Shown here piece after piece: positions 1 through 64,000 of a stretch of 64,000 bases of DNA. The position numbers and the translations under genes are program-made. Below the pieces are notes generated by a model that worked only from the letters and a program-made list of their open reading frames with translations, did no database searches and was not told the DNA's origin. The stretch is from the NCBI GenBank assembly GCA_048013815.1, contig CM106586.1, positions 15,562,001 to 15,626,000 on the forward strand, written 5' to 3'. Each line of letters starts with the position of its first letter. The stretch's first letter is position 1. Source of the stretch: Setoptus koraiensis (lineage: Eukaryota > Animalia > Arthropoda).

Positions 1-406
1 GCGGTGACATAGCTGACAGTTTGTCCTGCGCTGCTCTGCACGATTCACCTGTTGGGCCCAAAAGAATTGTTGTTCACCGGAGCCTACTTGCGCCCTGTGA
101 CACAGCGCTGGCTGCTGTGCAAACAGAGGAGATTCGTGCGGATATTTTTGCAACTCGTGATTGGTGCCGTCGATTCGACGGGCCCAACGGCGACCGGTTC
201 AGCGGTCATCATGATGCACTGTCCGACAGTGACCAGCGCGCAGTGTTGCCAACGCCCGTTCGAACCGGGTCGCCGAAAGGAACAATCAGGCGACGGAATG
301 GGAGCGGACGATCGAGTCGTTGGCTTGTTGCTTGGGCGACACACAGACAAACAAAGGAAGCACGTTAATCGATCCCATTGATCCGTCCTCATTCGCGTTC
401 GCGGGC

Positions 407-510
407 ACAGCAACAACGACAGCGACAACGATAGCAGCAACAACGACAGCGACAGCGACAACGACAGCAACAACGACAGCGACAACGACGGCAGCGGCAA
501 CAACGGCGCT
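407..510 (+). repeat. Degenerate (GCA/ACA/ACG/GCG) low-complexity hexamer-like repeat
   Basis: gcaacaacgacagcgacaacgatagcagcaacaacgacagcg... runs for about 100 bp; it generates only low-complexity shadow ORFs. Confidence 0.8.
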
Positions 511-879
511 GGCGAGAGAAAATCAACAACCTAAAATGATGTTATCATCATCGCTAGCGCCATTGTAGTTGTTGGTCTATGATGAAATAAATAACGACAA
601 GCACCTAGGGTCATTATCGTAGGAGCCGGTTTTACACGGGGGAACTTGCGACAGCAACACGTACTGCACGTGTTGCTGGCCGGTCGTTGGTGTTGTCGTT
701 GTTCGAGCAAACTTTTCAGTTTAATTCAACCGAGTGACACGAGCGACCGGCGGCAACTGATAGCTGCAACTGTGTTCTTTGGGAGCACGTCGAGCCATTC
801 TCTCGGTGCATACTCTTGCTATGCAACTATGCCGGCCAGTCATACTTGCAGTTTACACTTATGCGGGCGACTCACAAAT

Positions 880-969
880 ATAGCACAAGCCATAGATATA
901 GCAAAAGCTATCGATTTAGCACGAGCCGTAGAATTAGCACGAGCAACAGATATAGCGCGAGCCACAGAT
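880..969 (+). repeat. 18-bp degenerate tandem repeat, 5 copies
   Basis: atagcacaagccatagat / atagcaaaagctatcgat / ttagcacgagccgtagaa / ttagcacgagcaacagat / atagcgcgagccacagat. Confidence 0.9.
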
Positions 970-2204
970 CGGGGCCATAACGTTGCAATTGAATGGATTG
1001 AATGAAAAGAACGAAATGATACGACCAATGAAACGACGCCACGATATAGCGACGCACGAGACGCCGACGGCGCGGCGCGAAAAAGCGCGTAAATCACGCG
1101 TTGATTCGGCCGAATAACGCCTGAAAACAACGTCAAAGGATGTAAACAAAAGCACGAACGCAGCAAAGAACGAGCAAAGATTTAAAGATTCTTTTATAAG
1201 ACGACGAGACGCTGACTGGACAATGGTGCAATCTCAAGTGGAAACAGCAAATAAAACAGTTGTAACACAGCCAGACAAATGAGAAGTGGTGGGCGTACTA
1301 TTTGTTTGCTCTACTTCTTTATTTGTTGTCGTGCATGGGGCCGGCGCGGGCGACGTGTCGCGTACGTGGCACAGTCCGTGTTGGCCCGTGCGCACGTACG
1401 CAAACACGGGCCGGCGCATACCGACGCACATCCGTCCACCGCGCCCGACAATGAGTCGGGTAATGAGTGTTGGCGCGCATCTTGAGCTGATTGGCCGTTT
1501 GATTGGGTGCTCGTGGTCGACTTGTCCGCTGCCGGTTTGTCCGGCAAAGCGACCACTTTTGCCAACGGAGCCCCAACGGACCAACTGACCACTCAGCGAC
1601 TATATTTCGGCTCGTTGAGTGGCGAGCAAGTTGCGCGTTGCAAGTCGAGCGACGAAAATAGCGACGAAAACAATGAATTGGGGGGCCTCTGTCACTATTT
1701 TGGGACCAGAAGAGCAAAGCAAACAATGAGGCCGCGGCACAAACAAACCCACGCAAGATTTGTCGACAAGATTAGCTCACAATTGTCAGTGGGACAGCGG
1801 AGCGGAAGTTGACCGGTCATCGTCTAGTTTGCGCGCTAATGATGACGGGCATGCATTTTGCATTGGCGTCGGTTTCTTGCGGCAGCGATGCAAATGATGA
1901 TTGCAACTTGCAATTTATAAACGTCGCTTATGGACGCTTCATACGGTGCATTCTCTTGGTCGTATCATGCGACTCTGCGATGTATGAACTGGCCGCTGAT
2001 CGGCATGACAATTCCGGCCCGATCGGCCCGTAATGACTGGCGTTGTTACCTGTTGACAGTTTCGCGCTGAATTGTTTTACCCTCAATTGGGTCACACGCG
2101 TTTATAACGCGACGCGGTCGGTTATTTGCTGGGCGGCCACGCTCTCGGCACTGGATGAGCCGTTGGCTGTCGCGGAATCCAACGAAATAAACGAGCCAAC
2201 GGTC

Positions 2205-2264
2205 GCTCGGAAGCCCGCGGCTCGGAAACCCGCGGCTCGGAAACCCGCGGCTCGGGAGCCCGCG
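2205..2264 (+). repeat. 15-bp GC-rich minisatellite, 4 copies
   Basis: Unit GCTCGG(A/G)A(A/G)CCCGCG at 2205, 2220, 2235 and 2250. Confidence 0.95.
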
Positions 2265-2462
2265 CGGGCCAGATTGCAGCAGATAGCTTGTCGTAATTTA
2301 TACGCGAACGCCGCTTGGTTTCCACATGATATATATGCCCTCTATGCATGCAACCGGCGCTGCTGGCCAACTTGTTGGCCCATTTACATATTGTGCATTT
2401 ATGCTGTATAATGCACAATATCTGCAGTGTCGCGCCGAAGTGACAATTGGCTCGGTCCGCCG

Positions 2463-2530
2463 GTCGCCGGTCAGTTGCGGCCGTCGCCGGTCAGTTGTGG
2501 CCGTCGCCGGTCAGTTGTGGCCGTCGCCGG
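2463..2530 (+). repeat. 20-bp minisatellite (3 copies plus a partial) containing the E-box CAGTTG
   Basis: Unit GTCGCCGGTCAGTTG(C/T)GGCC at 2463, 2483 and 2503, partial at 2523. Confidence 0.95.
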
Positions 2531-2607
2531 GGGCATCAACGACAACGCGAGCAATCACAAAATCGCAAGTCTATTGTTGTCGGGCCGGCGAGTGTCATGG
2601 CTCATCA

Positions 2608-2655
2608 TTGGCCCGTCGTTGGCCCGTCGCTGGCCCGTCGCTGGCTCGTCGTTGG
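2608..2655 (+). repeat. 11-bp minisatellite, 4 copies plus a partial
   Basis: Unit (T/C)TGGC(C/T)CGTCG at 2608, 2619, 2630 and 2641. Confidence 0.9.
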
Positions 2656-2998
2656 CGGGATCGCACGCGGCGCTCAACATGACCGACAACAACACGATAA
2701 TGCAAAGAAGGGAACGCAAAGAACAACCAGCCAAGGAACAATTCGCAAATGAATGAATGAATGAATGAATGTTATTATTTATGTGCTGTTGCCAAATTAT
2801 CTGTGACAGCTGAATTTCAATTAGAGCAGAAAGCATAAAGAGCCGCGACCACCAACACGCCAGGTTATCTATCCGCGGTGCGCGCGTGATTGATCCCGTG
2901 GAGCCCCGTGAATCACGGCCCGTGATCCTGCGGGCCGCCCCCTCTCCGGCGTCTTCTCGCTGCTCGTCGCGCAGCCAGCCGAGCGCTCCGAACTCCGC

Positions 2999-3066
2999 AG
3001 TCCAAACTTCGGGTCAAAACTCCACAGTCCAAACTTCGGGTCCAAACTCCGGAGTCCGAGCCTCAA
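2999..3066 (+). repeat. 13/14-bp degenerate tandem repeat
   Basis: gtccaaacttcgg / gtcaaaactccaca / gtccaaacttcgg / gtccaaactccgga / gtccgagcctcaaa. Confidence 0.8.
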
Positions 3067-6000
3067 AGTCCGGGCGACGACTCACCCACCGGACACTGCT
3101 GGCGTGCACGTAGCGGCCGGCATAATGGATTGCATTTTGCGCACAAGTCAAAGCAGAGGCCCCATTCTAATCCTGTCGCCGACACTGGCGATCGACGACG
3201 CGATTGCAGGCCCGATCTCAATGGCTGATTTGATTGGGTCTCGGGACTGGCGCAGAACAGTGTTTCGGCACGCCGATAAGTCCCGTGTCTTGTATCATCG
3301 ACGGTCGCTGTCATTTATTTACTTCGTTTATTTCGTTTATTTATACGTTTTACGCGATAAGCGCGAGTCCGACGGATCGCATCGAGACGCGATGCCGATG
3401 TCGCCAATCGCCGAGAGCCGTCAATGAGTTTCTGCCTCTCGTCATCCAGAGGGAATTAGAGAAATCTTTCAGAGCTATCTCTGGGCCGTGGCAGAATTTC
3501 TCTGAGAATCCGCGAGCACTTTCGCAGCGCCAATGCACGTCAATTTGAGCCAGAGTGGCCAAAATGTTGCACGAGCACGCGGCGGGTGTAATATGGTCAA
3601 AAATCAACAAGTCAACCCAACTTTTCGAGCTGCTCGTTAAGCTGGATGCGACCAGTGATTTGCAGGCTGGCGTTTGGTCGCTGGCGATTGGCGAGCACAA
3701 CATTTGAAACTTGTAAACCATTCAGTTTGTGACAGTTGATGCGAGCCAACTTATCGCCCGCCAGCATGCGAGCCTGCGAGTCTGCGAGCCCCTCGAGCTT
3801 ATCCATAATGCGCGCCGTCTAATCTCGTCTAATCCAACTATGCCAACGGCGTCAGCAATTGTACAACTGCAAAGATTTATATTATAACAAGCCATACATT
3901 TATATATTTTTCGCCAATCTATAACGGCCTCTAATAATATAATATCTAGAACAGAATTAGCGACAGTGGCGGCGGGCGATTAGCGAGCATGAGAATGATC
4001 GCTCGCAGTTCGCAGTTTGAACGCGATTCGACAATCAGATCGGCTTCGATTTCGATTATTCTGTTTATTCGATTCGGTGCGCTTTCACACACACACCAGT
4101 GCCATGCTGCAAACTTGTGCCCCGTTCGCGATCGGCGCAATCGAACGAACGGGCGCAACAACGTCACGTAAGCTATTACGAAATGCGAGCGAATAAGCGC
4201 GTCTCGCTCTCGTCGAACGCGCCGAACGCGTCGAACGCTGCGAATCGTTCGAATGATCTATTTCTGTTTTGGCTGATCTGTCTCGTGGGCTGAGCCCGTG
4301 CAACGCGCGCTCGCATAATGCGTCTGCCAATTGCGCCCCTGCGCTGTCTCCATCTCACGTGTTCCACATCACTGGCGGGCCCCTGGCTGTCGATGGGCGC
4401 CGGCCGGTTGCCAACAATAACAACGACGACAACAGCGACAACAACCACGACAGCGACAAACAGAAAGGAGTAATGGGAACGGGGCTCTCGATGCTCCCAA
4501 TCATCGAATCCCAACCCGAGGGCTGGGTCAAGTGTGTCACGTGTGACAAAAAAGGGCTGCCCTCCATAATATCACATTTTTGCACAATAGCCACAGTGTG
4601 CCCAGTGTGAGCCTGTTATGCAACAGGCGCTGGTATCGCCATCGGTTTGGCTTCCTCTTTCATTCATTTTTTGCACAATTGTCATGTGCTGCTGGCCCCA
4701 ATGTCACCCAGTTCACCAATGTAGTTCGACGGATTCATGGGCACCGTTGATGATTTATTTTTTTCTATCCTGTCCATGCGAGGTGGAGAGCCGATTGCTT
4801 TGTTGCACTGAGGCCGCCATCCATCTGTTCTCCTTACCTGTTGCTCGACGATCGAGCCACATTAGATAACTGTTACGTTTACTCTTTTGCACCATTTTGG
4901 GGCCCGCCGTTCCGATGTCCGCGGCAACTGTTCGCCTGGAGTTAGTTTCCAGTTGAAACTGGCAACATTTGCCAGCCCATACTACCCACAGAACAGTTTG
5001 GACAGCAGCGACTCGATGCAGTTCTCACCACACAAGTGCTGCGTCGGGCCGCCCAAAAGCGAGCCAATTTGCACCAAAACGCAACTTGTCAGACCAACCA
5101 AAACCGAAGCGGCCAATTATTGCTGCCCGTCGACAAAGACGCAACTGTGGCTGTCACGCTATTGGCTCACATTTGCGTATATTTGCATAAATATCTATAT
5201 ATATATACATATTTCACCTTGGGCCATCAATTTGTTTGTGCTCGGCGGCGCTTCTTTTCGTTTCTCTGGCACTGTGGCCTTCTTTCGGGCACTGTCGCCT
5301 TGTCTCTGACACTGCTGTGCCCTCGAGGAACCGCCGGCAACACGGGAGCCCGGCATACCTGTTGAGCCCGCGCACACCGCGTCACAGTAAGCGACTCGAA
5401 ATGCATTTATACCGATACGCACGCCGGAGGGGACCGCTTTTTGGTGGACTGGTCGACGGTGGCCGAGCCAATCGATCATGCGCTGCACATGGCCGCTTGC
5501 AAGTTGCAAGTTTAAATATTTGATTACGACACGATGCGACAATGCAACGGCCTGGAGGAATAATTTGCACTGTTGTAATTTGCAAAGAAAAAAATTGTCC
5601 CAAAAAGTCTTGCGCGGCGCCGGCCCCATGCAAAATTCGTGTAAAATGCAATTTAAGCAACTGTTGCGCGCCATTAATTTCTCAATGCGTTTCCGTGGCT
5701 CTGGCATTGGTCTCGTTGCAATATTTGCCCAACACACATTACGCTCGCTCTAGATACATTACATTTATCCGCTCGTCTAATGGCCTCATCATTTTGTGCC
5801 CATCGGGCCATGTCACCGACGGCACCATGCAACCCAATGCAAGGCTGTGTTGTCGCGAATTGAGGACCCCATTTTAGAGCGAGAAACAGAGCGCTAGATC
5901 GAGACAAATTGAGTAAATAATTTTTGTGTGTTTGTCGCTTCTGCAGATCAGAGTATCGTCTGAAAGCAACGACATACAAACTGCAGTGCACCAAACAACC

Positions 6001-6380
6001 GATGGGCGGCCGACCGCCCATTTCTTCTCGTCCGAGGCCCCCGGTGTCAGGCCGATCCCAGAGAGAAGATACCCGAAGGAAATGATGGACATTATGCACC
6101 TACGGGGCTCATTATCGTGTCCGCTCTGCTCGCGTTTGCAGTTTTGCAATGTTCGCATGATCGCAAAACAGAAGCGAGCCGTTTGACGTCCTGAGTTGGA
6201 TGTTGCAAGTCCGAACGGAGGCTTGCTATGCGTACGCGAGGGCCGACAGGAGATACTTGTTGTTTATGGCAGTTGTCGTGATCGTCGTCGTGTTTGCTCG
6301 TAGTTGTTAAACTCTAGACATGAATGATTTTCCACTGTTTGTTTGCTGCGCACTTTGTTTTGTCCATTACTGGCTACCGC

Positions 6381-6381
<1 letters not shown>

Positions 6382-6467
<86 letters not shown>

Positions 6468-6486
6468 CAACGACGACGACGACGAC
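6382..6486 (+). repeat. (GAC)35 microsatellite with a few AAC interruptions
   Basis: 105 bp read directly; non-coding context. Confidence 0.97.
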
Positions 6487-7987
6487 GCGCTCACAAGTTG
6501 CCACGATGAGAAAGTATAATGTTTGCAAAACGACCAGTTGCAGATGCCTCAATGATCAACTACCTGGCCATTATGCACCAATCAATAATCAGGTTGCATC
6601 ATTGCTCTGGCGTGCTTGTGTCTCTGCCAGTCTATGCGACTATTTCTGTCTGGCGCCGTCCCTAATGGCTTTTACCTGACGCGCAACAAGCGCCAGGCAA
6701 AATGCAAAAGTATAAATCAATCGAATCTTGTATCTGTAACTTGTAGATGCAAGATAATAAGTATTGTTCGGTCGATTGTAGCAACCCTGGTTGCATCATT
6801 AGATCGGTTTATCCGGGCGACAATGACGATTATCCCGCCTAATCGCCACAATACAGGCCAACAATATGCCCGTGAATCGTAATACGGATTCTGTATCTAA
6901 CAACGGTCTGACATTGTTAGAGAGAGAGAGAGAGGGGGCCTCTGGCCGACGCGACCACCTATCTGACTCTTGCTGGCCTGATCTAAAGCTAATCTGATTA
7001 TTATTTCCACTTTGTGCAATCCACAATTTACAAGGCTCAGATTATCGCGCAAGATGATAATAGATTGCGGGCCCCATGAAATACATACCGCAATATATCG
7101 CTTTGGGGTATTTCTTGCGGGAATAATTGTGTTCCAAGAATATTCCATATCTTCTAACCTCGTGTTGCATATCATCGCCGGGCCCATCGTGACCCAGTGG
7201 GCCACTGAAAGAGCACGATGCCAGGCCGCTAATCAGTGCCGCTTTGCCAGAACAACAACAACAACAACAACAAACATGCTGCTTGCGGTGGTGTTAAAGT
7301 TTGACAGCGTTAAAGCGCCGATAAACAGTGACTTTTGCTGTCGGAATTATCATATCATAACATTGGATGTATACCGTTCGTTCAATGCAATGATTGCTTC
7401 GAACAGCACAAGAAGTTTGTCAAAGAAGCAACCATTGTAATGCGACGTAGCGATGCATACCGATTGTTATGCTCCTTTGGGCCCATTGTTTGTGTTTACT
7501 TCACCTTCACTTCACTTACCTTACTCCCCGCCTAGAAAACTTTTACGTTACCTTTTTCTTTTCTTGTGTTCTTGTCTGCCCCTCTGCCCCTCCCCCCCCG
7601 ATTTGCCCCCGTTCTTCTCTGTATCCTTGGAAGTGCATACCTGGTTTGCCAGTGTGTCCCTCTTTGGTGCTTTCCCCCTGTGGCAGCGCCACCGATTCAA
7701 ACTAGAGCATTATGGTGACATGGTTGCGATGATTGCGACAAGGAAAGAAGCGTTAAAAAAGTTCGCGACGAGAGTGTGGAAAATCGTCGCCAAAAGAAGT
7801 TTGCCAGCGACGGGCAGTTTGTGATCGACGACCTCAGTGACGATTCGCACACCGACACAACCGGTCGCATCTATTCATTCTGGCATATATCACGCCATAA
7901 CGCGCGCTATCATCGCTAGCATCCAGTGAATCGCCACACTGACCACGGCAACACACACACACGCACATACAGGTAACGAATATCAGT

Positions 7988-9448
7988 ATGGCCAACATTG
8001 ACATGGCCACAGCAAACAATAATTGCTGGACAGCAACAACAACAACAAGCCAGCTCCTCGTGGCCAACAGCCACCAAGACGAGCACGTGCTAAGAGAATT
8101 CGACGACGAATACGTCGAACAATACTGTAATACTGTAGGCCAGCGAGAATTATCCTCAAATGATGCACTCAATCAGGTGCACCAATCGGTATACGAAATG
8201 GATGATGCAACAACAACACCATCGGCGTTAGCTTATCACGATATAACAACAAACGAGAAAAATTTTCATCTTTTTCACCATCATCAGCATCATATTATAA
8301 CAACAACCGCCAACAACCATTACAACAACAATCACCACCAACACCAACAACAATTGCCAGATTCAACGTATATGGACGAAGATCAGCTTGACCAGCTACA
8401 AACAAATGATGAACAACAACATAACAACCAAAACTCGCTATTCGACAACAACAATCAATTGATTGCTAGCATATATAACCAACAACAACAGCCACAACAC
8501 TACGAGCACCAGCATCAACAATTTGGACAAACAATAATGATGACAGTGCCTTCATACTTGTCATCGGCCTTATCACCTGTATCCTCTCAATCCCCGCCAC
8601 TAAATTCGTCATCATTTATTTCAGAATCAACAAGTGCCACAAGTAGCAATATTGCCTTTTCAACAACACCACCAACAACAACAAGCAAACCTAAACAACA
8701 AGCAGCGGACCAATTAAAAGCAGGCACAGCAAAGAGGTCAGCGGCAGCCAAAGCATCAACGGGTAAAAAGAGGACTAATTCGCGTGGTGTCAAGACCATC
8801 ACAAAAAACAAAGACAATAACTCCAAGAAAGATATCTACAATGCCAGAATGTTGCTGAGCTCTTTAGAGCAAGCGCTGCAGCAAAGAAAGAGATCCTCAT
8901 CAACAAGCTCCTCCATTTTTTCTAGCAGCTATAACGGACCTAGCGACGACATCACGGACGATTCAACCGAGTCAACAACGACTTTTAACAACAACAATAA
9001 TCAACTCAATAATAATACTAGTAATGACGAAAACAAGGATGTTGTCGGTTACAATAATCAAAATATAAAAACATCAACTATCACAAACAATAACTCAATT
9101 GGGAACAATACCGATGATGGAGCAATATGTATAGTTGACAAGATTGTTATTAAAAAAATTAGAAGAGTTAAGGCAAATAACAGGGAACGTAATAGGATGC
9201 ACAATTTAAATGGGGCACTAGACAGACTAAGACAACATTTGCCTCCATTCGATGAAGACGCCAAATTAACGAAAATTGAAACATTGAGAGTGGCCAAAGA
9301 TTACATACTGAAACTCACTAGCTTGCTAGAGCAAACCCAAACTCAGACTAACATCAATTGCGAAACGGAACATTCCGCGATGGTGGACGACAAAACAACA
9401 CCAACAGATCAGTGCCAAGATATCAAGCCAATATTCTTAAGCACTTGA
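7988..9448 (+). CDS. tap: Neurogenin/tap-family bHLH transcription factor, intronless, 486 aa
   Basis: C-terminal b[46 protein letters not shown] matches the neurogenin signature ([13 protein letters not shown]...[14 protein letters not shown]). Long N/Q/H/T-rich N-terminus. Confidence 0.88.
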
Positions 9449-9761: not shown

Positions 9762-10640
9762 CTAATTAAATGACTGATTTATAGCCATATATCTTATGGA
9801 TCTGGTGCGATCACTACCACCAGGCGACTTGTTCAGCATGTTTTGGGCTAATTCGATCAAATCCCTGGGTAATGCCACCTGTAAGCAAACAATTTTTGCA
9901 AGTAGTTAGTAGACCGCACAATCAAGTGACCCGTTAAGTAAGAGGCCAAGCTATTATTGCTATCGGATCATTTGCTGGAAACTCACCTGAGTGGCGACGT
10001 AGTTGATGTCTTCGTAAAGCCTGATCCATTTCTTTGTTGGTCCATCAAATCTAATGTGGTGATTGTCCCGGGTCAATTCTTTGGCCTCTTCGCGGTGTAA
10101 TTCCGTCTCACGATTGTGCAACCACATTTTGACTACACTTCTTGCCGACTCAAACGCACCGGCAAATATATCGTACTTCTTTTTGACCCAGCGCAATTCA
10201 TCTATTGGCTGGCCGGCGATTACGCCTAACTCACTGTTGATATATAAATATCTAACATAGTTTTTTATATTCAGCACATTCGATTGTGCATTGTCTTTAG
10301 CGATGGCCTCAAGTTCCTCAACTATGTTTTCCGTTTGCGTGGTTATCCACGCTAACAGAGTACCCGTCAGGAAGGGCAGCTCACCAGTAGTCTGGCCCCT
10401 TGCTCGAGCTCTTATTCTAAGGCTTTCTTCATTGGGTATATTTGTCACAGGTGGCTGGAATCTGGACAATTCGCGATTACTCTGAGTAGATTCATCTACC
10501 ACCTCTTTCCATTTTTGCTTGCCTTCTTTTATCTGTTGAACGCTTTCTCCACTGTCCGACTTATCGGACTTACAGGCTACAAATTGATTGCCTATAATAA
10601 GTGCACAGCATGCGCTTACAATTAGCGTAGATAGATACAT
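9762..10640 (-). CDS. Orphan secreted protein A; complement(join(9762..9878,9987..10640))
   Basis: ATG followed by a signal peptide (MYLSTLIVSACCALIIGNQFVAC). Donor CAG|GTGAGT at 9987/9986 and acceptor TTTGCTTACAG|GTG at 9879/9878 give an in-frame 38-aa last exon. Paralogous to 11261..11878. Confidence 0.75.
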
Positions 10641-11260
10641 TTTTGATTATAATCATAAACAATTTTGTATGCAAATCTAAAGAACACGATGAAAAACAAG
10701 GCCGTTATATGAACACTATTATAGCAGATGAAAAAAGGATGAATTCTCTTGAGCTACGCTAGTTGCAACACAATAGCACTAGCAAAATTGATACCTTTCT
10801 ATATATAGCATCTACACTGGTGCCATATATGTGAGCAAAGATCAATTGCTAAAAATGTGAGACTATTTTTGTCAGAGGCATCCACGAAAACAATCCTAAA
10901 CAAGAGGCAGGCAAGAGTCACTCTGTCTATCATGTTCACAAGAATCACATGATGCGTAGAGGTGATCTTGCCAAACGATGGTGTCTATTCCAAAGATCGT
11001 AAGCAACATAGTTCGCTCGATAAATAGAAAGGACATCGTCTATATTCTATCGAGCTTGTTTGTGACACCAGTAGCATTCACTCTACTACTACAATGGCTA
11101 GCCTCTCTCCAGTAGCACCAGTAGAGTTATATTTTGATTTGTCACACACAATTCAGCGTAAACGAAGAGATTGTAAAAATTTTTGATAATGTGAACAATG
11201 GGCTAAAAACTTTTGTTGGCACAACACCCGGAATACCCCATTATCAGAGACCGCACATAG

Positions 11261-11878
11261 ATGCTTACCATTATGATTACGTCAGGCGATAACTCTGGGC
11301 TGCTGTTGTTTTTCTTTATAAATCTGACAGTCTATGTAATAACGAATGTCCAAAATGTTGACTGTCAAAAAAGAGAGCAAGCCGTTTACATGACACGCAT
11401 CAGTCCCGAATTACATTCATGGATTATGAGGAGAACAGAGGAAATTGTATTTGATCTAGATATATTACAAAATGCCATTGAGCACAAAGCTAAAGCACCC
11501 ATACTGACACTTGTTGCCTATTTCAATAGCTGCTTAGATCTATTGGTCATACTGGACTTGAATATACCGGGACTGGAGTATCTAGAACATGAAAAAGATC
11601 TCTATGATGATTCATTCACGCGAAATTTAGCTAACTCTGTACAAGATTATGTTGTCAATACCATGACTAAAATGATTGAGCTCGAACAATCGATGAAAAA
11701 GAATACTAAACCCTCGCAGAAATGGATTGATCTGTATGAAATACTAGATATGCTATCAAAGCAAGTCCGCTTTGATCCATGGATAGTATCCACTATAAAT
11801 AGTTTTTTTGAAGAAAACAAGGCCGGCCAACTATCCTACAGGCGGAAGCTATTCAAGGAATATACTGAAATTAAGTAA
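11261..11878 (+). CDS. Orphan secreted protein B, 205 aa (possible extra 3' exon 11984..12074)
   Basis: Hydrophobic N-terminus (LLLFFFINLTVYVI..VDC). Shares W-I-x3-T-E-x-I-V and K-W-I-x-L-Y-E motifs with protein A. The stop overlaps a possible AA|GTAAGT donor with an in-frame acceptor at 11983. Confidence 0.72.
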   Translation: MLTIMITSGDNSGLLLFFFINLTVYVITNVQNVDCQKREQAVYMTRISPELHSWIMRRTEEIVFDLDILQNAIEHKAKAPILTLVAYFNSCLDLLVILDLNIPGLEYLEHEKDLYDDSFTRNLANSVQDYVVNTMTKMIELEQSMKKNTKPSQKWIDLYEILDMLSKQVRFDPWIVSTINSFFEENKAGQLSYRRKLFKEYTEIK

Positions 11879-12188
11879 GTGCTGTCAGTATTCATAATGG
11901 AAATCAATTACAACAGTTTTCGTCCCCTAAACTCATCGACGTATAGCTCTTGAAATATTCTCTTTATCTAAACTTCTGTGCAGGATTGTGAACAACAGTT
12001 ATACGGTTACCGCCACAACTAAAGCAACCAATTTTCTGCAAAGAATATTCGGACCTGGACCTAACAAACAGTAGTGAAATGCTCAAATATAAGACGAATG
12101 ATAGTGTGATAGTAATAAAGATAATTCAAATACTTTCTATGAGTGTTTAATTTAAGATTAAATTGTCTGATGGAATTCTAAGATAAAT

Positions 12189-13630
12189 TCATTCGTCGTC
12201 TTCTTGCTTTTCTTCGAATCTAATCTTTTTAGACTGATGGTTCAGTTGGTCTGGCTTGCCTCTCTTTTTTGCAGATCCTCCCATGTTTCGCAACCTGCCA
12301 TCCTCCAGAGTTCTCAGTCTGGCCTCTAAAGTGGCTCGATGCTCAGTACCTAAAGCATTAGTGATATCTTCACCTAAGGCATCAACTCTAGTAGCTAGAG
12401 AGGCTTTGGCCGCAAGCATACGAGACATCTTTCCTTTCATTTGTGCATTACTTTGACCCACCAATTGCGCATGATAGATTAAACCGTATTTTGGGGTATC
12501 ATGTTTAGTTTTCAAAGCTCTAAATAGTGCTTTTTCCGCACCCAAGATTTGCACAGTGGAAGCTGGGTGTTTGGCTAAATTCATCAAGGAACCTGCATGA
12601 GAAATCAATCTTGCACCAACCAATTCACCAACAAGAATAGTTAAGTTGGGTGCTATAGTCATCATTCTATTCTTGAGATATTCGAACAATTGTGCACGAT
12701 AGTCGGTAAGTTCAATAATGTTCTCACATAAACTCTTAATATTAGTTAAATCCTCTTCTGCTATATCAGTTCCCATAGATATCTCGGCGTATTCTTTAAC
12801 TTTTTCTTGAGTGGCCTCGTCAGGTATGATCTCGCTGAGATCTGTAGTTGCCGCATCTGTGCGCATACCCATGGCTAATATAGTCCTAACGTATGTAGAA
12901 TGATCTGAGATAATCTTTGATAATTCAGGAAAATGCCAACCATACCACTCCCTGCATCGCATAATGTAGTTGTTAAGTTCTTTGTCCAAATCATCTAATA
13001 GTGATACAGCTTGAATAATCATAGTGTCAACTTTGTCAGGTGTGAATTTTAATTTATATCTGCCAATACCATGTGAGGCACCTAACTGCATGATTTCATT
13101 GTCCTGGTTAGACCAGTCAGGCACAAGATCTTCTATTCTAAACCTAATGAGGGACATGAGTTCTTGGACGGCAGCACTAGTGACGCAATTAACACTGAAT
13201 TTTTCCTTGATTTTATTACCCAGCTTTGAGTCAGCAACAGCCAGCTCTTGTGCGATTTCCTCGCTGAGAATGGACTTTTTGATGGTTTTCTTGAGCTTGC
13301 GCCCTATTTTTCCTTCTAACAGCGACGCTGCCGAGTCAACGGCCTCCGCTGTAGATTTGAATTTTTCAAAATGATGCAAAGTTATGATTTTGCTCAGTTT
13401 TTCTCCGCCTTCTTGGAAGCATTTTGTAAGCTTGTCCAACTTGGACAGTTTTTTGTCATCGTGAAGCTATATGGAAAAGGTGCGATTGAGATGATGGATA
13501 AGAAATTGTTGGTGAAATGGTGGCCTGTAAAACGAATCGAGAGATATCATGATTAGGTGTGAGAGTGCTGGTGTGAAATATTTACCTTGAAGACGGCATA
13601 TCCTTGGGCGGTCTCGAACAAGACCAACAT
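12189..13630 (-). CDS. NOP58: Nucleolar protein 58 (box C/D snoRNP); complement(join(12189..13466,13586..13630)), 440 aa
   Basis: MLVLFETAQGYAVFK|LHDDKKL start; KVDTMIIQAVSLLDDLDKELNNYIMRCREWYGWHFPEL and STVQILGAEKALFRALKTKHDTPKYGLIYHA motifs; GT-AG intron 13467..13585. Confidence 0.95.
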
Positions 13631-47949: not shown

Positions 47950-50900
47950 ATGGCAGTAGAGCTCGAGTCGAGAAGGAGGCCCTTCCTATCTGGCCTGACA
48001 ATCTGGTCGATTGGTGTTGTCATTATTAGCTGCCTAATAGTGACCCTGGTGAAACAGGCCAATAATGGCAAATCGTTTATTGTTGGCGATGCCACATCAT
48101 CTCATCAAAGTCAGCAACAAATCGCTGACACCAAACAAACATTTGCGTCCGAAATCAAAAATTGGGCAGGCAGATTAGGCTCTGACATTTATGAGGGCTC
48201 ATCTAAGGCGACCTGTGTGCGTTCAATTCGCGACGCCTATCTGGAACGAGGCGCCCAAGTAGAGCAAATTGACGCTTTCAGGATGCATTCAGACATGTTG
48301 CAACAAATCAGCGATATGATGGTCTGGCACAGGAAGGCTGTTGAATTGATTGCACGAAATGCCGAAGCTCTAGCTGCCAATCACACCTTTATAAAGAATC
48401 TTCATTATGATTATTTAGATGTGCATCGTTTGCGTGGCCTAGACGAGCCCCATTTTCCGACGGACTTCTCTCAATTAGCCGATGATCTATCAAATCAAGC
48501 TGCCTCGTCATCATCCGGAGCGATCAACGTCACCGAGGTACAACAACAGATAATGTTACAGCAACAGTTGGCCAACAATCCGTTAGTGAACGACCCGTCG
48601 TCCTCGGCGGGTTTCAATCAACAAACACCAAGCCAATATCCGGCCTCTAGCAATGGTGGATCACCGGTGCCGGGGCCAGCCGAATGGCAGACACCATTCA
48701 GATATATAGCGCTGTCGAAGCACAAGAATTTCCCTGACATTTTGGTCAATTTGGACATGTCTGCCGTCCATTTACCGGTGCCCGTTTATCCCGGCCAGCA
48801 GGAGATTATGAATGGCATTATGTGGACAGAGGGACTAAATAAGGTTTTTAAGGACAACATGGTTAGAAATCCGCGTCTCACAAATCAATATTTTGCCTCG
48901 TATTTGGGCTTCTTGCGAACATATCCCGCACACAAATGGCGAATTGCACGTAGCGAGCCTGACTTGTACGATGCACGAATGAGGCCGTGGTACGTTGCTG
49001 GTGCCGCATCTCCCAAAGATCTAGTGATTTTAGTTGATTCTAGTGGCTCGATGACGGGCTTGAGACGCGAAATAGCCAAAGGTGTTGTATTTGAAATACT
49101 GGACACGCTCACCGACAATGATTATTTTTCCATATTGAAATTCTCTGAGACTGTCACTCCGATTGGATTGCCTCGATGCGATGCTCCGAAGCCGCCCAAA
49201 TTGGGCACCAATATTGCCAATCTGTGTTTGCCAAACAATCCCACCCCGTTGGATAATAAACAAAAGGTGATTTGTAACAATTACAAAGAACAGCAACAAC
49301 GTCAGACTTTGTACAGACAAGCCCAGATTAAATTGAAGAAGGCCAAACAGCAGCAACTGTTGCAACAACAACTCCTTATGAAAAACAAGAACACACCAAA
49401 TGCCGGTCAGCAATTTGACGCCTCCGATTTGACCACTGACCAGCAAACAATGATGGCCATTGACGACAACATAACCGTCTCGCTTTTAGACGATCTCAAT
49501 GTGATCAATTACAACAATCAACAATATGCATTTAGTCCTACCATTGTCAATGTCACAAACGATCTTGAGGGAGCGCTCATTTTGCCTGCCACGGGCAGAA
49601 ATATTCGCCACATCAAGGGTAATTTCAGTATGACCACATCGGGAATAGCAAATTTCACACACGCTCTAACGGCCGCCTTTGAATTGTTGCAATCATATAA
49701 TAGGACGGGCGATCAGGGTTCTCAATGCAACCAGGCCATTATGCTCATTACTGATGGCGCCCCTGAGGAGAATTTCCAGGAAATTTTCAATCGTTACAAC
49801 TACCCGGATAAGTCGATCAGATTATTTAGTTATGTGATTGGTCGCGAGGTGGGCGACATCAATCCAACCCGTTTGATGGCTTGCAACAATCGAGGATACT
49901 ACACGCACGTGATAAATCTGTCCGAAGTCCGCGAACAAGTGCAACAATATCTGCCTGTGATGTCTAGACCCTTGGTGTTGTGGAAGCAGCATCCGGTTGT
50001 TTGGACGGCCGCATACGGAGACGAAACTTATCAGTTGTTGTCCGATTGGGTGTGGGAAAGCAAGAGACGCGAAAGGGCCAAGATTATCCTGAGCGAAGAA
50101 AGAGATCGCTTGAGTATGGAGGCGTCCAACGAAACTTATACAGTTATTATAATATTGACAGGCATAAAGGAGTATGATGAAATACCACAAGTTGACGAGG
50201 AGCTCAAGAGGCGCTATGTTTGCGAAGACAAAATAGACGATTTGCCGTCGGACGACGAATTTGACACATTGGGCTACAATGACATGGATTGTCATTGGCA
50301 AACTAAGCGTGCCGATCTATTGACCAGTGTTGTTCAGCCAGTGTTTAATACAAAAAACGAAACTCTCTTCTTTGAGCGAGTCCTCCAAAAGAACATTTGG
50401 ATCGAAAAGGAAAAAATGGTGTTCAATGCACAATTGCTGGGCATGGCCTCAGTGGATATTAGCATCGCTGATCTGATGGCCATGGCACCATCGCACAAGC
50501 TAGGCCCCAATGCTTATCCCATATTGGTCACCAACAACGGCTACATTATGTCTCATCCAAATTTGCGCGCCCTATTAGAGGACCCCACCGATCGTCAGTC
50601 GCGTATATTGAAACCGTTTTTTGCTTCGGTTGATCTTAGTCACGTCGAGCTAACTGTTAGCGAGGGTGCCGACAGGAGGCGACCTTATGAGTTTAGTAGG
50701 CGCATTTTGGCGCTTAGAGACGCAGTGGTGAAACGAATGATTGGCTACGATACATTCATGACAAAGCGACCAATTGATTGCCAAAAGAGGGCCCAAACTC
50801 GCAACCAAACCTTCTATTACGGACCAATCAAAGATACGCCATTCAGTTTTTTGATTTCGTTACCACAACCGTACGGATTGTATCGTGTCAAGGCCCAATT

Positions 50901-61973: not shown

Positions 61974-62840
61974 GCGACAACAGTGAAAGTAACGCCAGCG
62001 ATGACACTCGGTGACACAACACAAACAGCGGCACGCAAGCATCTTTCGTCATCGGTTTAGTTTCAGCATCATTTCTTGTAACATTGTTGTGTAACAATGT
62101 CTGCTCGCCCGTCGCATCACAATCGGCGCCTGTCAGTGGTGGCCGTAGACCCCACGGCATAGAGTTGCGATTGTGGAGAAGAGTCGCCGCGGGGTGGGCG
62201 CGCAGATGAAGAGATGTCACCAAGAAAAGGTGTTATGTAACAATATTGTGAGTTATGCAACAATGTCGCATGTTGCCCAATGTCCGACAAGTTGGAGAGA
62301 ACAGACGAGAGTCGACAGTCGGCGCGATCTCGCAGAGCCAACATGCCGCTGTCCGAACATGACTGTTTGACAGCGGCTCACTAATGCTGTCATCGTTACG
62401 AGCAGATAGTGTTACATAATGCGACATTGTGTCGCCGTGATGTGTGTAACGACCATTGTTGGCCGCTCAACAGAGACACAAGCGACAAGTGTATCAATGA
62501 ACTCTGTCCCATTGTGCGCCATCGGTCTGCATCACACTGTCGGCTATTCTGGGCTATTCTGCACTGGCCGCAAGACGCAGCCCAACGGCGGGCCCATTGT
62601 GGTCACTTTCTCCATTTTTGCCATTTGTAAACAAACAATTTGTAGACAAACAATTTGTGATAGACAATTTGTGATAGACGAACAAATTGTGGACTAACAA
62701 ATTGGCAGCACATTTAGCATACATGGCGTGCCAATTTACAGTTGCCTTGCTCATCTGGGCTGCGCTAACTGTAAATTGTCGCAAATTGTGTAACTACTAG
62801 TGGCCATACTGCACGACACCACAGACACCCTAGCGCTTGA

Positions 62841-62887
62841 CCGCTATAAATAGCGGCCCGGGGCAACCATGGCCGGCTCATTTGCAT
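62841..62887 (+). promoter_or_regulatory. Candidate core promoter: TATA box, Inr-like TCATTT, octamer ATTTGCAT
   Basis: TATAAA at 62845; TCATTT at 62878; ATTTGCAT at 62880..62887; ATG of the next gene at 63182. Confidence 0.55.
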
Positions 62888-63181
62888 CGTCCGAGTCGCA
62901 TAGGTCGCTCATGAAAGCGCACAAGTCAAGCCAGCAAGCAGATACAGCCAACCAGCAAGCCAGCCAACGTCCAGACCGAATATTCAGATAATCCGATCAG
63001 ATAAACCAGATATAACACAACACATTTTGCACATTTGCACAACAACACACACGTAATACAGCACCAAGAGCATCGTGGAGTACAGCAGTGATACACGGTG
63101 CTTCACTGGGTACCACTGAGTTATATCACAGTTAGCTAGCAATATAACAGAGCCACGTATCATATCATATATCACACCAAA

Positions 63182-64000
63182 ATGGCCAAACTGAGCGTAC
63201 CTGTCACATTGGTGCTATCGTCGGGCGCCTGTCTGGCCGTCTGTTGTCTCATACTGATCGCAAATACCCACTCAATTCAAGCGAGCACCTCTGACTCGCC
63301 CCTGGCTGCCGTCGTTTCCGTGCCCATGGATGAGGCCGAGACGGTGGCCGTCACACAACAATTGTTTGCCAATAACGGATCGTCACAGCAACACGAAAAA
63401 GAGGCAGAAAAGAAGCCCCAAACAACGACAACAACCAACTCAACCGAACAGCACTCAAACCAATCACAACCACCGACACAACAGAGAAACACAATTAGAC
63501 ACAGACAACGCGGCAGCAGACAATATTCGCCCAGCTCGCTAGACTCATACGCAAACGCATATCAGGCCGTTTCCGGTGCCGGCTCAGCAGCCAGCCAGTA
63601 CTCAGGCGACGCTGATTATGCGCCTATAACCAGCTCCAAATTATCGTCGTCGGCCAACTATCACCCGTCCTATTATGACAGGCCGTCTCTGTCCGCTCTC
63701 GACAGTGTTGGCCCGTCATCTGGTGCAACCCAACAGCAACTGTCATCCAGTGGCAGAGCCTCTGATTACATAACCCAACAGCAGCAGCAGCAATACAGCA
63801 ACGCTGGTCACTTCAATGGAGATCAATTGAGTCAAACAGATTATTCTGACGGGCCCAGCTCGTCTGCAATGTATTCAGCGGGGCACAGTGGCGCCTCTAG
63901 CGGACCAGTTCATGGCAACAGCAACAGCCCGGCATCTGGTAGTGTGTCGTCCCACCAGGCGGCCCACTCATTGAACAGTCCAAGCCACCAAGCGATGTAT
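63182..64000 (+). CDS. Secreted low-complexity (S/Q/A/Y-rich) protein, 5' part, open to the window end
   Basis: 273 codons without a stop from ATG 63182; signal peptide MAKLSVPVTLVLSSGACLAVCCLILIA; RQRGSR furin-like site. Missing from the ORF track because it has no stop inside the window. Confidence 0.82.
   Translation, partial: MAKLSVPVTLVLSSGACLAVCCLILIANTHSIQASTSDSPLAAVVSVPMDEAETVAVTQQLFANNGSSQQHEKEAEKKPQTTTTTNSTEQHSNQSQPPTQQRNTIRHRQRGSRQYSPSSLDSYANAYQAVSGAGSAASQYSGDADYAPITSSKLSSSANYHPSYYDRPSLSALDSVGPSSGATQQQLSSSGRASDYITQQQQQQYSNAGHFNGDQLSQTDYSDGPSSSAMYSAGHSGASSGPVHGNSNSPASGSVSSHQAAHSLNSPSHQAMY

Follow-up and report, generated by a model that had tools for sequence, protein, structure and literature searches.

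What kind of proteins are encoded by two genes that diverge from a common 620-bp spacer in the genome of Setoptus koraiensis, an eriophyoid mite (Phytoptidae) that was collected from Pinus koraiensis and has a chromosome-level assembly of two chromosomes (PMC11920263)? We studied these genes in a window of 64,000 nt from CM106586.1; all window coordinates count from its first letter. Gene A (9762-10640, minus strand) and gene B (11261-11878, plus strand) are transcribed divergently, and their start codons are 620 bp apart. The original prediction described them as a head-to-head pair of highly diverged, secreted orphan paralogs and as candidate salivary effectors of a plant-feeding mite; its coordinates and the divergent layout around the spacer are right. 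Our reading, to which we give slightly better than even confidence as a whole, is that A and B are two of three genes of this mite for an undescribed family of secreted, cysteine-poor, helical proteins that bind a partner outside the cell, in the mite's own physiology.

Judged by their sequences, A and B are true, highly diverged paralogs. BLASTP aligns the two proteins at 26% identity over 128 aa (E 5e-7; A 95-221 on B 51-171), and the motifs quoted in the original prediction are present in both, in colinear order. The tryptophan motifs, whose spacing had been put at about 100-107 aa, lie 107 aa apart in A (W98 and W205) and 101 aa apart in B (W54 and W155). A whole-genome search with B gave a weak match that turned out to be a third paralog, C, located on the other chromosome; the BLASTP E-values are 1e-5 for B-C and 0.002 for A-C, and a stretch of the form RISPEL(H/Y)xWIxRR is common to B and C. 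We compared Smith-Waterman scores, calculated with the first 30 residues removed, to those of 2000 shuffled sequences and found z values of 11.8 (A-B), 8.4 (B-C) and 6.5 (A-C). All 2000 shuffles were exceeded for each pair, and the A-B alignment thus withstands the shuffling test that had been suggested for it. The family profile detects exactly three genes, A, B and C, in the 48.8-Mb genome (two contigs, 48,755,295 bases); against the six-frame translation of the window, its E-values are 6e-53 for A and 3e-46 for B. An internal three-fold repeat (tryptophan motifs 53-54 residues apart) was rejected, as hhalign among the three segments gave a probability of ~1%.

The family extends well beyond this genome. 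A single HMMER pass with a five-sequence profile over 1.84 billion representative proteins (cut-off E<1e-3) recovered 34 clusters of relatives, 26 of them below 1e-10. Word-index searches matched only P0002 (the A ortholog, 81%), P0001 (the C ortholog, 72%) and P0031; the word index was too coarse for this family, and it took the full HMMER scan to reveal the relatives. When the sources of 20 clusters were looked up, 19 were found to come from Logan and one from ENA, i.e., from unannotated assemblies, and none of these 20 was from a named, annotated proteome. The label of orphans has to be abandoned, given the third paralog in the genome, the 34 clusters of relatives and the two old subfamilies described below. 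On the other hand, the absence of a recognised family was borne out. With A and B, Pfam gave no Blo-t-5 family match at E<=1; among 37 members, there were only single-member noise matches at E>=0.01 (one Not3 match, E 0.01), so that 0 of the 37 match Pfam, and the family profile has no match among PDB sequences. ESM Atlas searches with B and C returned no usable match. The profile search that had been proposed for the pair, applied to the genome and to protein libraries, therefore leads to three genes, 34 clusters and no known family, and we conclude that this is an undescribed family of small, secreted, all-helical proteins.

The shared core of the family comprises ~160 residues with three near-invariant tryptophans; the near-invariant columns (A numbering) are W98, L138, W151, K155, E185 and W205. 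The maximum-likelihood tree contains the following three clades: (i) a short clade of 17 rows (160-210 aa, support 99/92), which includes A; (ii) a long clade of 15 rows (250-336 aa, support 95/91), which includes C, and whose members have an additional N-terminal module FLPPD..IVGNGFKL and a C-terminal tail GLYY..VPAHFPFSAQDAI; (iii) a clade of B and P0003 (100/99), which has a stem of 2.86 substitutions per column and falls on the short side of the split between the long clade and short plus B (95/91). The grouping of A and B as a single clade was not rejected in the approximately unbiased test (p 0.168), and two histories are therefore compatible with the data: the duplication may be old, with B lost elsewhere, or it may be recent and inverted, with a subsequent burst of change in B. 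A is this mite's ortholog within a widespread lineage, with B as its divergent, lineage-restricted paralog in head-to-head orientation.

Gene A consists of two exons on the minus strand. Exon 1 (9987-10640, 218 codons, ATG at 10640) encodes the signal peptide, a linker of ~65 aa and the helical core ending in ...YVATQ. It is followed by a phase-0 intron of 108 nt (9879-9986), with a GTGAGT donor from 9986 that abuts the CAG at 9987 (...VATQ) and a pyrimidine-rich CTTACAG acceptor (AG 9880-9879). Exon 2 (9762-9878) has 38 codons plus TAG and encodes the conserved C-terminal tail. The open reading frame (ORF) called to 9960 runs eight codons into the intron, and position 9762 of the original prediction corresponds to the stop codon of the spliced model. 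The two exons were used as separate queries in comparisons. Exon 2 matches the C-termini of P0013 and P0010 (BLASTP E 7e-7 and 6e-6, respectively), and these spliced relatives confirm the spliced model. P0010, P0013, P0020 and P0027 are all spliced exactly at the donor position of A and continue with a tail that matches A exon 2, and at least ten ORF-called short-type relatives read ..(H)VS.. at this position, which is the read-through of a GTNAGY donor. The contigs of P0010 and P0013, 948 and 957 nt long, are most simply explained as assembled transcripts, which would mean that other species transcribe and splice genes of the short type. A thus has the marks of the short subfamily, namely, a phase-0 intron right before a C-terminal tail that reads ..KSPxG..D..R..RY.

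Gene B is a single ORF of 205 codons plus TAA (11261-11878, plus strand). Alternatively, translation may begin at the second ATG (11273), the one aligned with the start of the ortholog P0003. The TAA of B overlaps a GTAAGT donor (11875-11880), and a good acceptor is located 109 nt further on; a putative alternative 3' end (11875-12074, plus strand) would include a possible 109-nt intron up to AG 11982-11983 and a possible exon of 30 codons at 11984-12074. The intron of C sits a few codons from the position equivalent to this putative donor. When the tail profile of the family and long type was compared with the three forward frames downstream of B, no match was found; the same profile finds exon 2 of C at E 9e-5. 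The family alignment also shows that B is without the long-type N-terminal module. Membership of B in the long subfamily was accordingly rejected: there is no FLPPD..IVGNGFKL module and no tail match, and B has its own clade in the tree.

Paralog C has two exons (C1, about 22,679,875-22,681,215; locus L005:1153-2493). Exon 1 (L005:1153-1989) has 279 codons and its own signal-like N-terminus. The TAA that closes its reading frame overlaps a GTAAGT donor; exon 2 follows ~390 nt later and encodes GMLYKAFNGELSFSLPFAVQDSILRGY, which is the match to the long-type tail profile mentioned above. The C intron is crowded with microsatellites (CACTATT x4 and CAACAACCTG x5). A search with the long-type alignment detected one intronless long-type gene on the JGI metagenome contig Ga0268249_1000047 (75,148 bp), at 5992-6867 of locus L009:1-12858, and no synteny was found between this locus and the upstream neighbourhood of C. 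The contig is intron-poor animal DNA, in which, by eye, the adjoining ORFs resemble an MT-A70-type methyltransferase, a VRK/CK1-type kinase and mitochondrial ribosomal S5; it probably originates from an eriophyoid-like mite in the sample.

The neighbouring Nop58 gene provides an independent view of the host lineage. Its best named relatives are from acariform mites (Oppia 69%, Dinothrombium 68%, Brevipalpus 66%), in agreement with the eriophyoid host supposed in the original prediction. About 40 Nop58 clusters from Logan, ENA and JGI are at 71-79% identity, nearer than any named mite, which is the pattern that would be expected for a poorly annotated clade such as Eriophyoidea. The family of A and B is probably confined to eriophyoid mites.

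All three family genes have orthologs in the assembly of a sister species, and Nop58 was used as the divergence baseline, a single gene compared at the level of protein identity. The identities are 81% for A (P0002), 92% over 183 aa for B (P0003) and 72% for C (P0001), compared to 97% for Nop58 (P0035); in the cores, the corresponding values are 86%, 94% and 77% for A, B and C. A and C therefore change much faster than Nop58, whereas B does not stand out, and the pair's description as fast-diverging is only partly true: on this single baseline it would fit A, as well as C, but not B. The contigs from which P0002, P0003 and P0035 derive all have the same length, 36,224 bp, so that linkage of A, B and Nop58 in the sister species is almost certain as well; the head-to-head order of A and B is probably the same there.

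Both N-termini are signal-like, as had been predicted, according to a heuristic that combines Kyte-Doolittle hydrophobicity with the -3/-1 rule: a hydrophobic stretch (means 3.0 in A and 2.6 in B) is followed by small residues at -3/-1. In A, the segment covers residues 1-23 (10572-10640, minus strand), the 11-residue maximum is 3.01 at residue 6, the likely cleavage is VAC|K, and there is no membrane-like segment beyond. In B, it covers residues 1-35 (11261-11365, plus strand), with the hydrophobic LLLFFFINLTVYVI, a maximum of 2.55 at residue 14 and likely cleavage at VDC|Q. The stretch ends in the same V-x-C type in A, B and C (ARC|D in the latter). An 11-residue maximum of at least 2.2 within the first 45 residues was found in 33 of 34 non-fragment rows, the exception being P0032 (1.67); P0011 fits once its upstream ORF extension is removed. 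Nearly all full-length members have the hydrophobic stretch in the first 30-40 residues and, except for a conserved buried helix, no later membrane-like segment. The C-termini of A and B are neither hydrophobic nor equipped with a KDEL-type motif. Signal segments evolve fastest, with 51-61% identity to the sister species versus 77-94% in the cores. For example, the signal segment of B is 51% identical to that of P0003, and its core is 94% identical; such fast change is as expected for a signal peptide.

The expectation of all-alpha, low-cysteine proteins was also supported: mature A and B contain 1-2 Cys, and the AlphaFold2 models, which were built from a shallow five-sequence alignment, are all-alpha. 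The model of B (mean pLDDT 70, core blocks 74-92) is helical throughout residues 49-204, and that of C has a mean pLDDT of 59 (core blocks 65-86). Foldseek against PDB found nothing at E<=0.001 for the B and C models. With VIA-align, for which helical matches carry meaning from Z ~13 up, the first three core helices matched only generic three-helix bundles; the best matches were to Not5/CNOT3 for both B (Z 9.2) and C (Z 10.5), and further matches included syntaxin Habc, MIT, BAG and designed bundles.

These observations suggest the following scenario. An ancestral short/B-type gene would have been duplicated in inverted orientation; A would have kept the canonical short-type sequence, and B would have diverged strongly and later come under constraint, as its 94% core identity to the ortholog suggests. 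Both proteins would enter the secretory pathway, where the signal peptide would be cut after the conserved Cys (VAC|K, VDC|Q), and the mature proteins would be released as soluble helical bundles. They would act outside the cell, presumably by binding a partner (ligand or protein) and not by catalysis, and their role would most likely lie in extracellular processes of the mite itself. The two genes may also be co-regulated through their common 620-bp spacer.

Other explanations have to be weighed against this scenario. One of them, namely that the two ORFs are unrelated or non-coding and resemble each other by chance, could appeal to the low identity of A and B (26%), but it is already refuted: none of the 2000 shuffles reaches the observed score, orthologs exist in another assembly (81% for A, 92% for B), there are 34 clusters of relatives, and the splice site is conserved. 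Its probability is negligible. It is also very improbable that the proteins are not secreted but membrane-tethered or organellar, with a hydrophobic segment that serves as a signal anchor and stays uncleaved or, in B, results from the choice of start codon. The hydrophobic stretch of B starts at residue 13-14, behind an acidic n-region, and B has a second hydrophobic helix, as this explanation would have it. However, the stretches are short (about 11-16 residues) and are followed by small residues at -3/-1, and, despite the fast change of the segment (the 51-61% given above versus 77-94% in the cores), the pattern persists in almost every full-length member. The second helix of B corresponds in the alignment to a conserved buried helix of the long-type proteins, LLLNTLVDLDNL, and the model places it inside the bundle (pLDDT 86-89).

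The role of the proteins is the point at which the original prediction and our reading part. If A and B were salivary effectors, the salivary glands would produce them for injection into the cells of pine needles, where they would bind plant targets and thereby suppress defence or alter host cells. This idea is compatible with the results and is a guess; we consider it possible but unlikely. The signal peptide and the small, soluble, helical form of the proteins fit it, as do the lack of relatives in annotated non-eriophyoid proteomes of the libraries searched and the divergence of A (81%) and C (72%) compared to the housekeeping neighbour Nop58 (97%). Effectors are expected to be lineage-specific, and of the 612 proteins predicted to be secreted by Aculops lycopersici, over half have no orthologs outside eriophyoids (PMC7738191). 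Conversely, there are only three copies in the genome, with no tandem expansion and no birth-and-death pattern; the subfamilies are old; B is well conserved (94% core identity); and the pair sits between a basic helix-loop-helix (bHLH) gene and Nop58, outside any cluster of secreted genes. Tandem expansion is what is commonly pointed to in families of effectors. The four points just listed speak mildly against an effector, and an endogenous extracellular role is more likely. A wider form of the salivary idea, in which the short and long lineages would be core salivary proteins across Eriophyoidea and A and B a co-regulated module, with B as an offshoot of the Setoptus lineage retuned to a target in the conifer host, appears doubtful to us; if true, Eriophyoidea would have a first example of an effector family that is conserved throughout the superfamily. 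Slightly less probable again is a structural or reproductive secretion (egg coat, spermatophore, cuticle lining, gut matrix) or a carrier of lipids or other hydrophobic ligands, like apolipophorin-III or the group 5/21 mite allergens. The presence of the family across many assemblies, in separate short and long lineages, fits such a clade-wide physiological role, and the first three core helices do form a three-helix bundle, with Blo t 5 among many equal structural matches (Z 7.4, rank 45). Yet, noise aside, none of the 37 members matches Blo t 5, apolipophorin-III or any other Pfam model at E<=0.1, the structural matches are generic (the best Z values, those to Not5/CNOT3, stay under ~13), and the repetitive or low-complexity composition typical of structural secretions is absent.

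It should be noted that several points weigh against our reading of an undescribed, secreted, endogenous family. The signal peptides were judged by the heuristic described above and not by a trained predictor; the n-region of B ahead of the hydrophobic stretch is long and uncharged or acidic; and a core helix of B, residues 80-98, is strongly hydrophobic (19-residue Kyte-Doolittle mean 1.89). The profile was built from five sequences and run in one pass, so more distant relatives may exist. The restriction to eriophyoids is drawn indirectly, from the sources of 20 clusters and the Nop58 pattern, and the functional part is deduced wholly from anatomy. The equal size of the contigs of P0002, P0003 and P0035 is no proof that they are one contig.

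Among known systems, the closest in general features are the lineage-specific secreted and salivary families of mites, such as the salivary proteins of Tetranychus urticae and the predicted secretome of Aculops lycopersici (PMC7738191). These have a signal peptide, are small and without domain annotation, are restricted to one mite lineage and diverge faster than housekeeping genes. The present family differs in having three genes and old subfamilies instead of species-specific expansions, and no sequence relation to any named protein was found. The group 5/21 allergens of astigmatid mites (Blo t 5, Der p 5, Der p 21) are likewise secreted, cysteine-poor helical bundles of acariform mites. Blo t 5 (2jmh) superposes on the first three core helices of C over 87 residues, level with unrelated bundles, as one of some 50 generic ones that match equally well, and it is not listed for B. 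Moreover, there is no Pfam or sequence match, and the core has ~160 residues and six helices, compared to ~100 residues and three helices in the allergens; the Pfam Blo-t-5 model is unmatched by the 37 members. The N-terminal bundle of Not5/CNOT3 has the same arrangement of three antiparallel helices over ~80-100 residues (B: 77 residues aligned, rmsd 2.3; C: 104 residues, rmsd 5.8), but it is an intracellular ribosome-binding domain, the sequence identity is 7-9%, and the Z values are under the meaningful level. Apolipophorin-III, an insect exchangeable apolipoprotein, is a secreted, Cys-free, amphipathic five-helix bundle of similar size and serves as an analogy only: it has no Pfam match in any member and does not figure in the highest-ranking structural matches.

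Eriophyoid mites are of major importance as plant pests and as vectors of viruses, and the molecular basis of their host manipulation is not known (PMC7738191). With three genes per genome and clear orthologs, the family is a concrete and easily testable candidate; its proteins could be salivary components that have been conserved or could serve an extracellular function specific to the clade. At minimum, the gain is a definition, corrected gene models and a profile for an unannotated gene family. If its expression is non-salivary, it would be an ordinary lineage-specific family of unknown function. Lineage-restricted secreted families of unknown function are familiar in mite genomes.

Finally, we describe the surroundings of the pair. 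On one side, a bHLH transcription-factor gene (7988-9448, plus strand; Pfam HLH E 3e-17) is a single exon of 486 codons, with long His/Gln/Asn/Thr-rich low-complexity tracts before the HLH domain (residues 392-443). On the other side, an exon of Nop58 (12189-13439, minus strand; Pfam Nop E 1e-86) served as the anchor for synteny and the baseline for divergence. The spacer between A and B (10641-11260, 620 bp) is the presumed seat of both promoters and contains a mirrored TATA-like 13-mer, ATA[T/A]ATAGAAAGG when read towards each gene. The two copies are at 10794-10806, 154-166 nt upstream of the ATG of A, and at 11020-11032, 229-241 nt upstream of that of B. As a sign of a duplicated promoter, the mirrored 13-mer was dropped, because 13% of shuffles equal it (p ~0.13); the two elements are a lead to the core promoters, no more. 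The presumed leader of B has an upstream ATG that opens an ORF of 33 codons (11093-11194), so that either transcription starts downstream of this ORF or the leader is spliced or regulated. The G+C content is 0.49-0.54 at window positions 1-8000 and 62001-64000, compared to 0.36-0.43 over most of the remainder, with 0.46 at 48001-50000 and an abrupt step near 8 kb.

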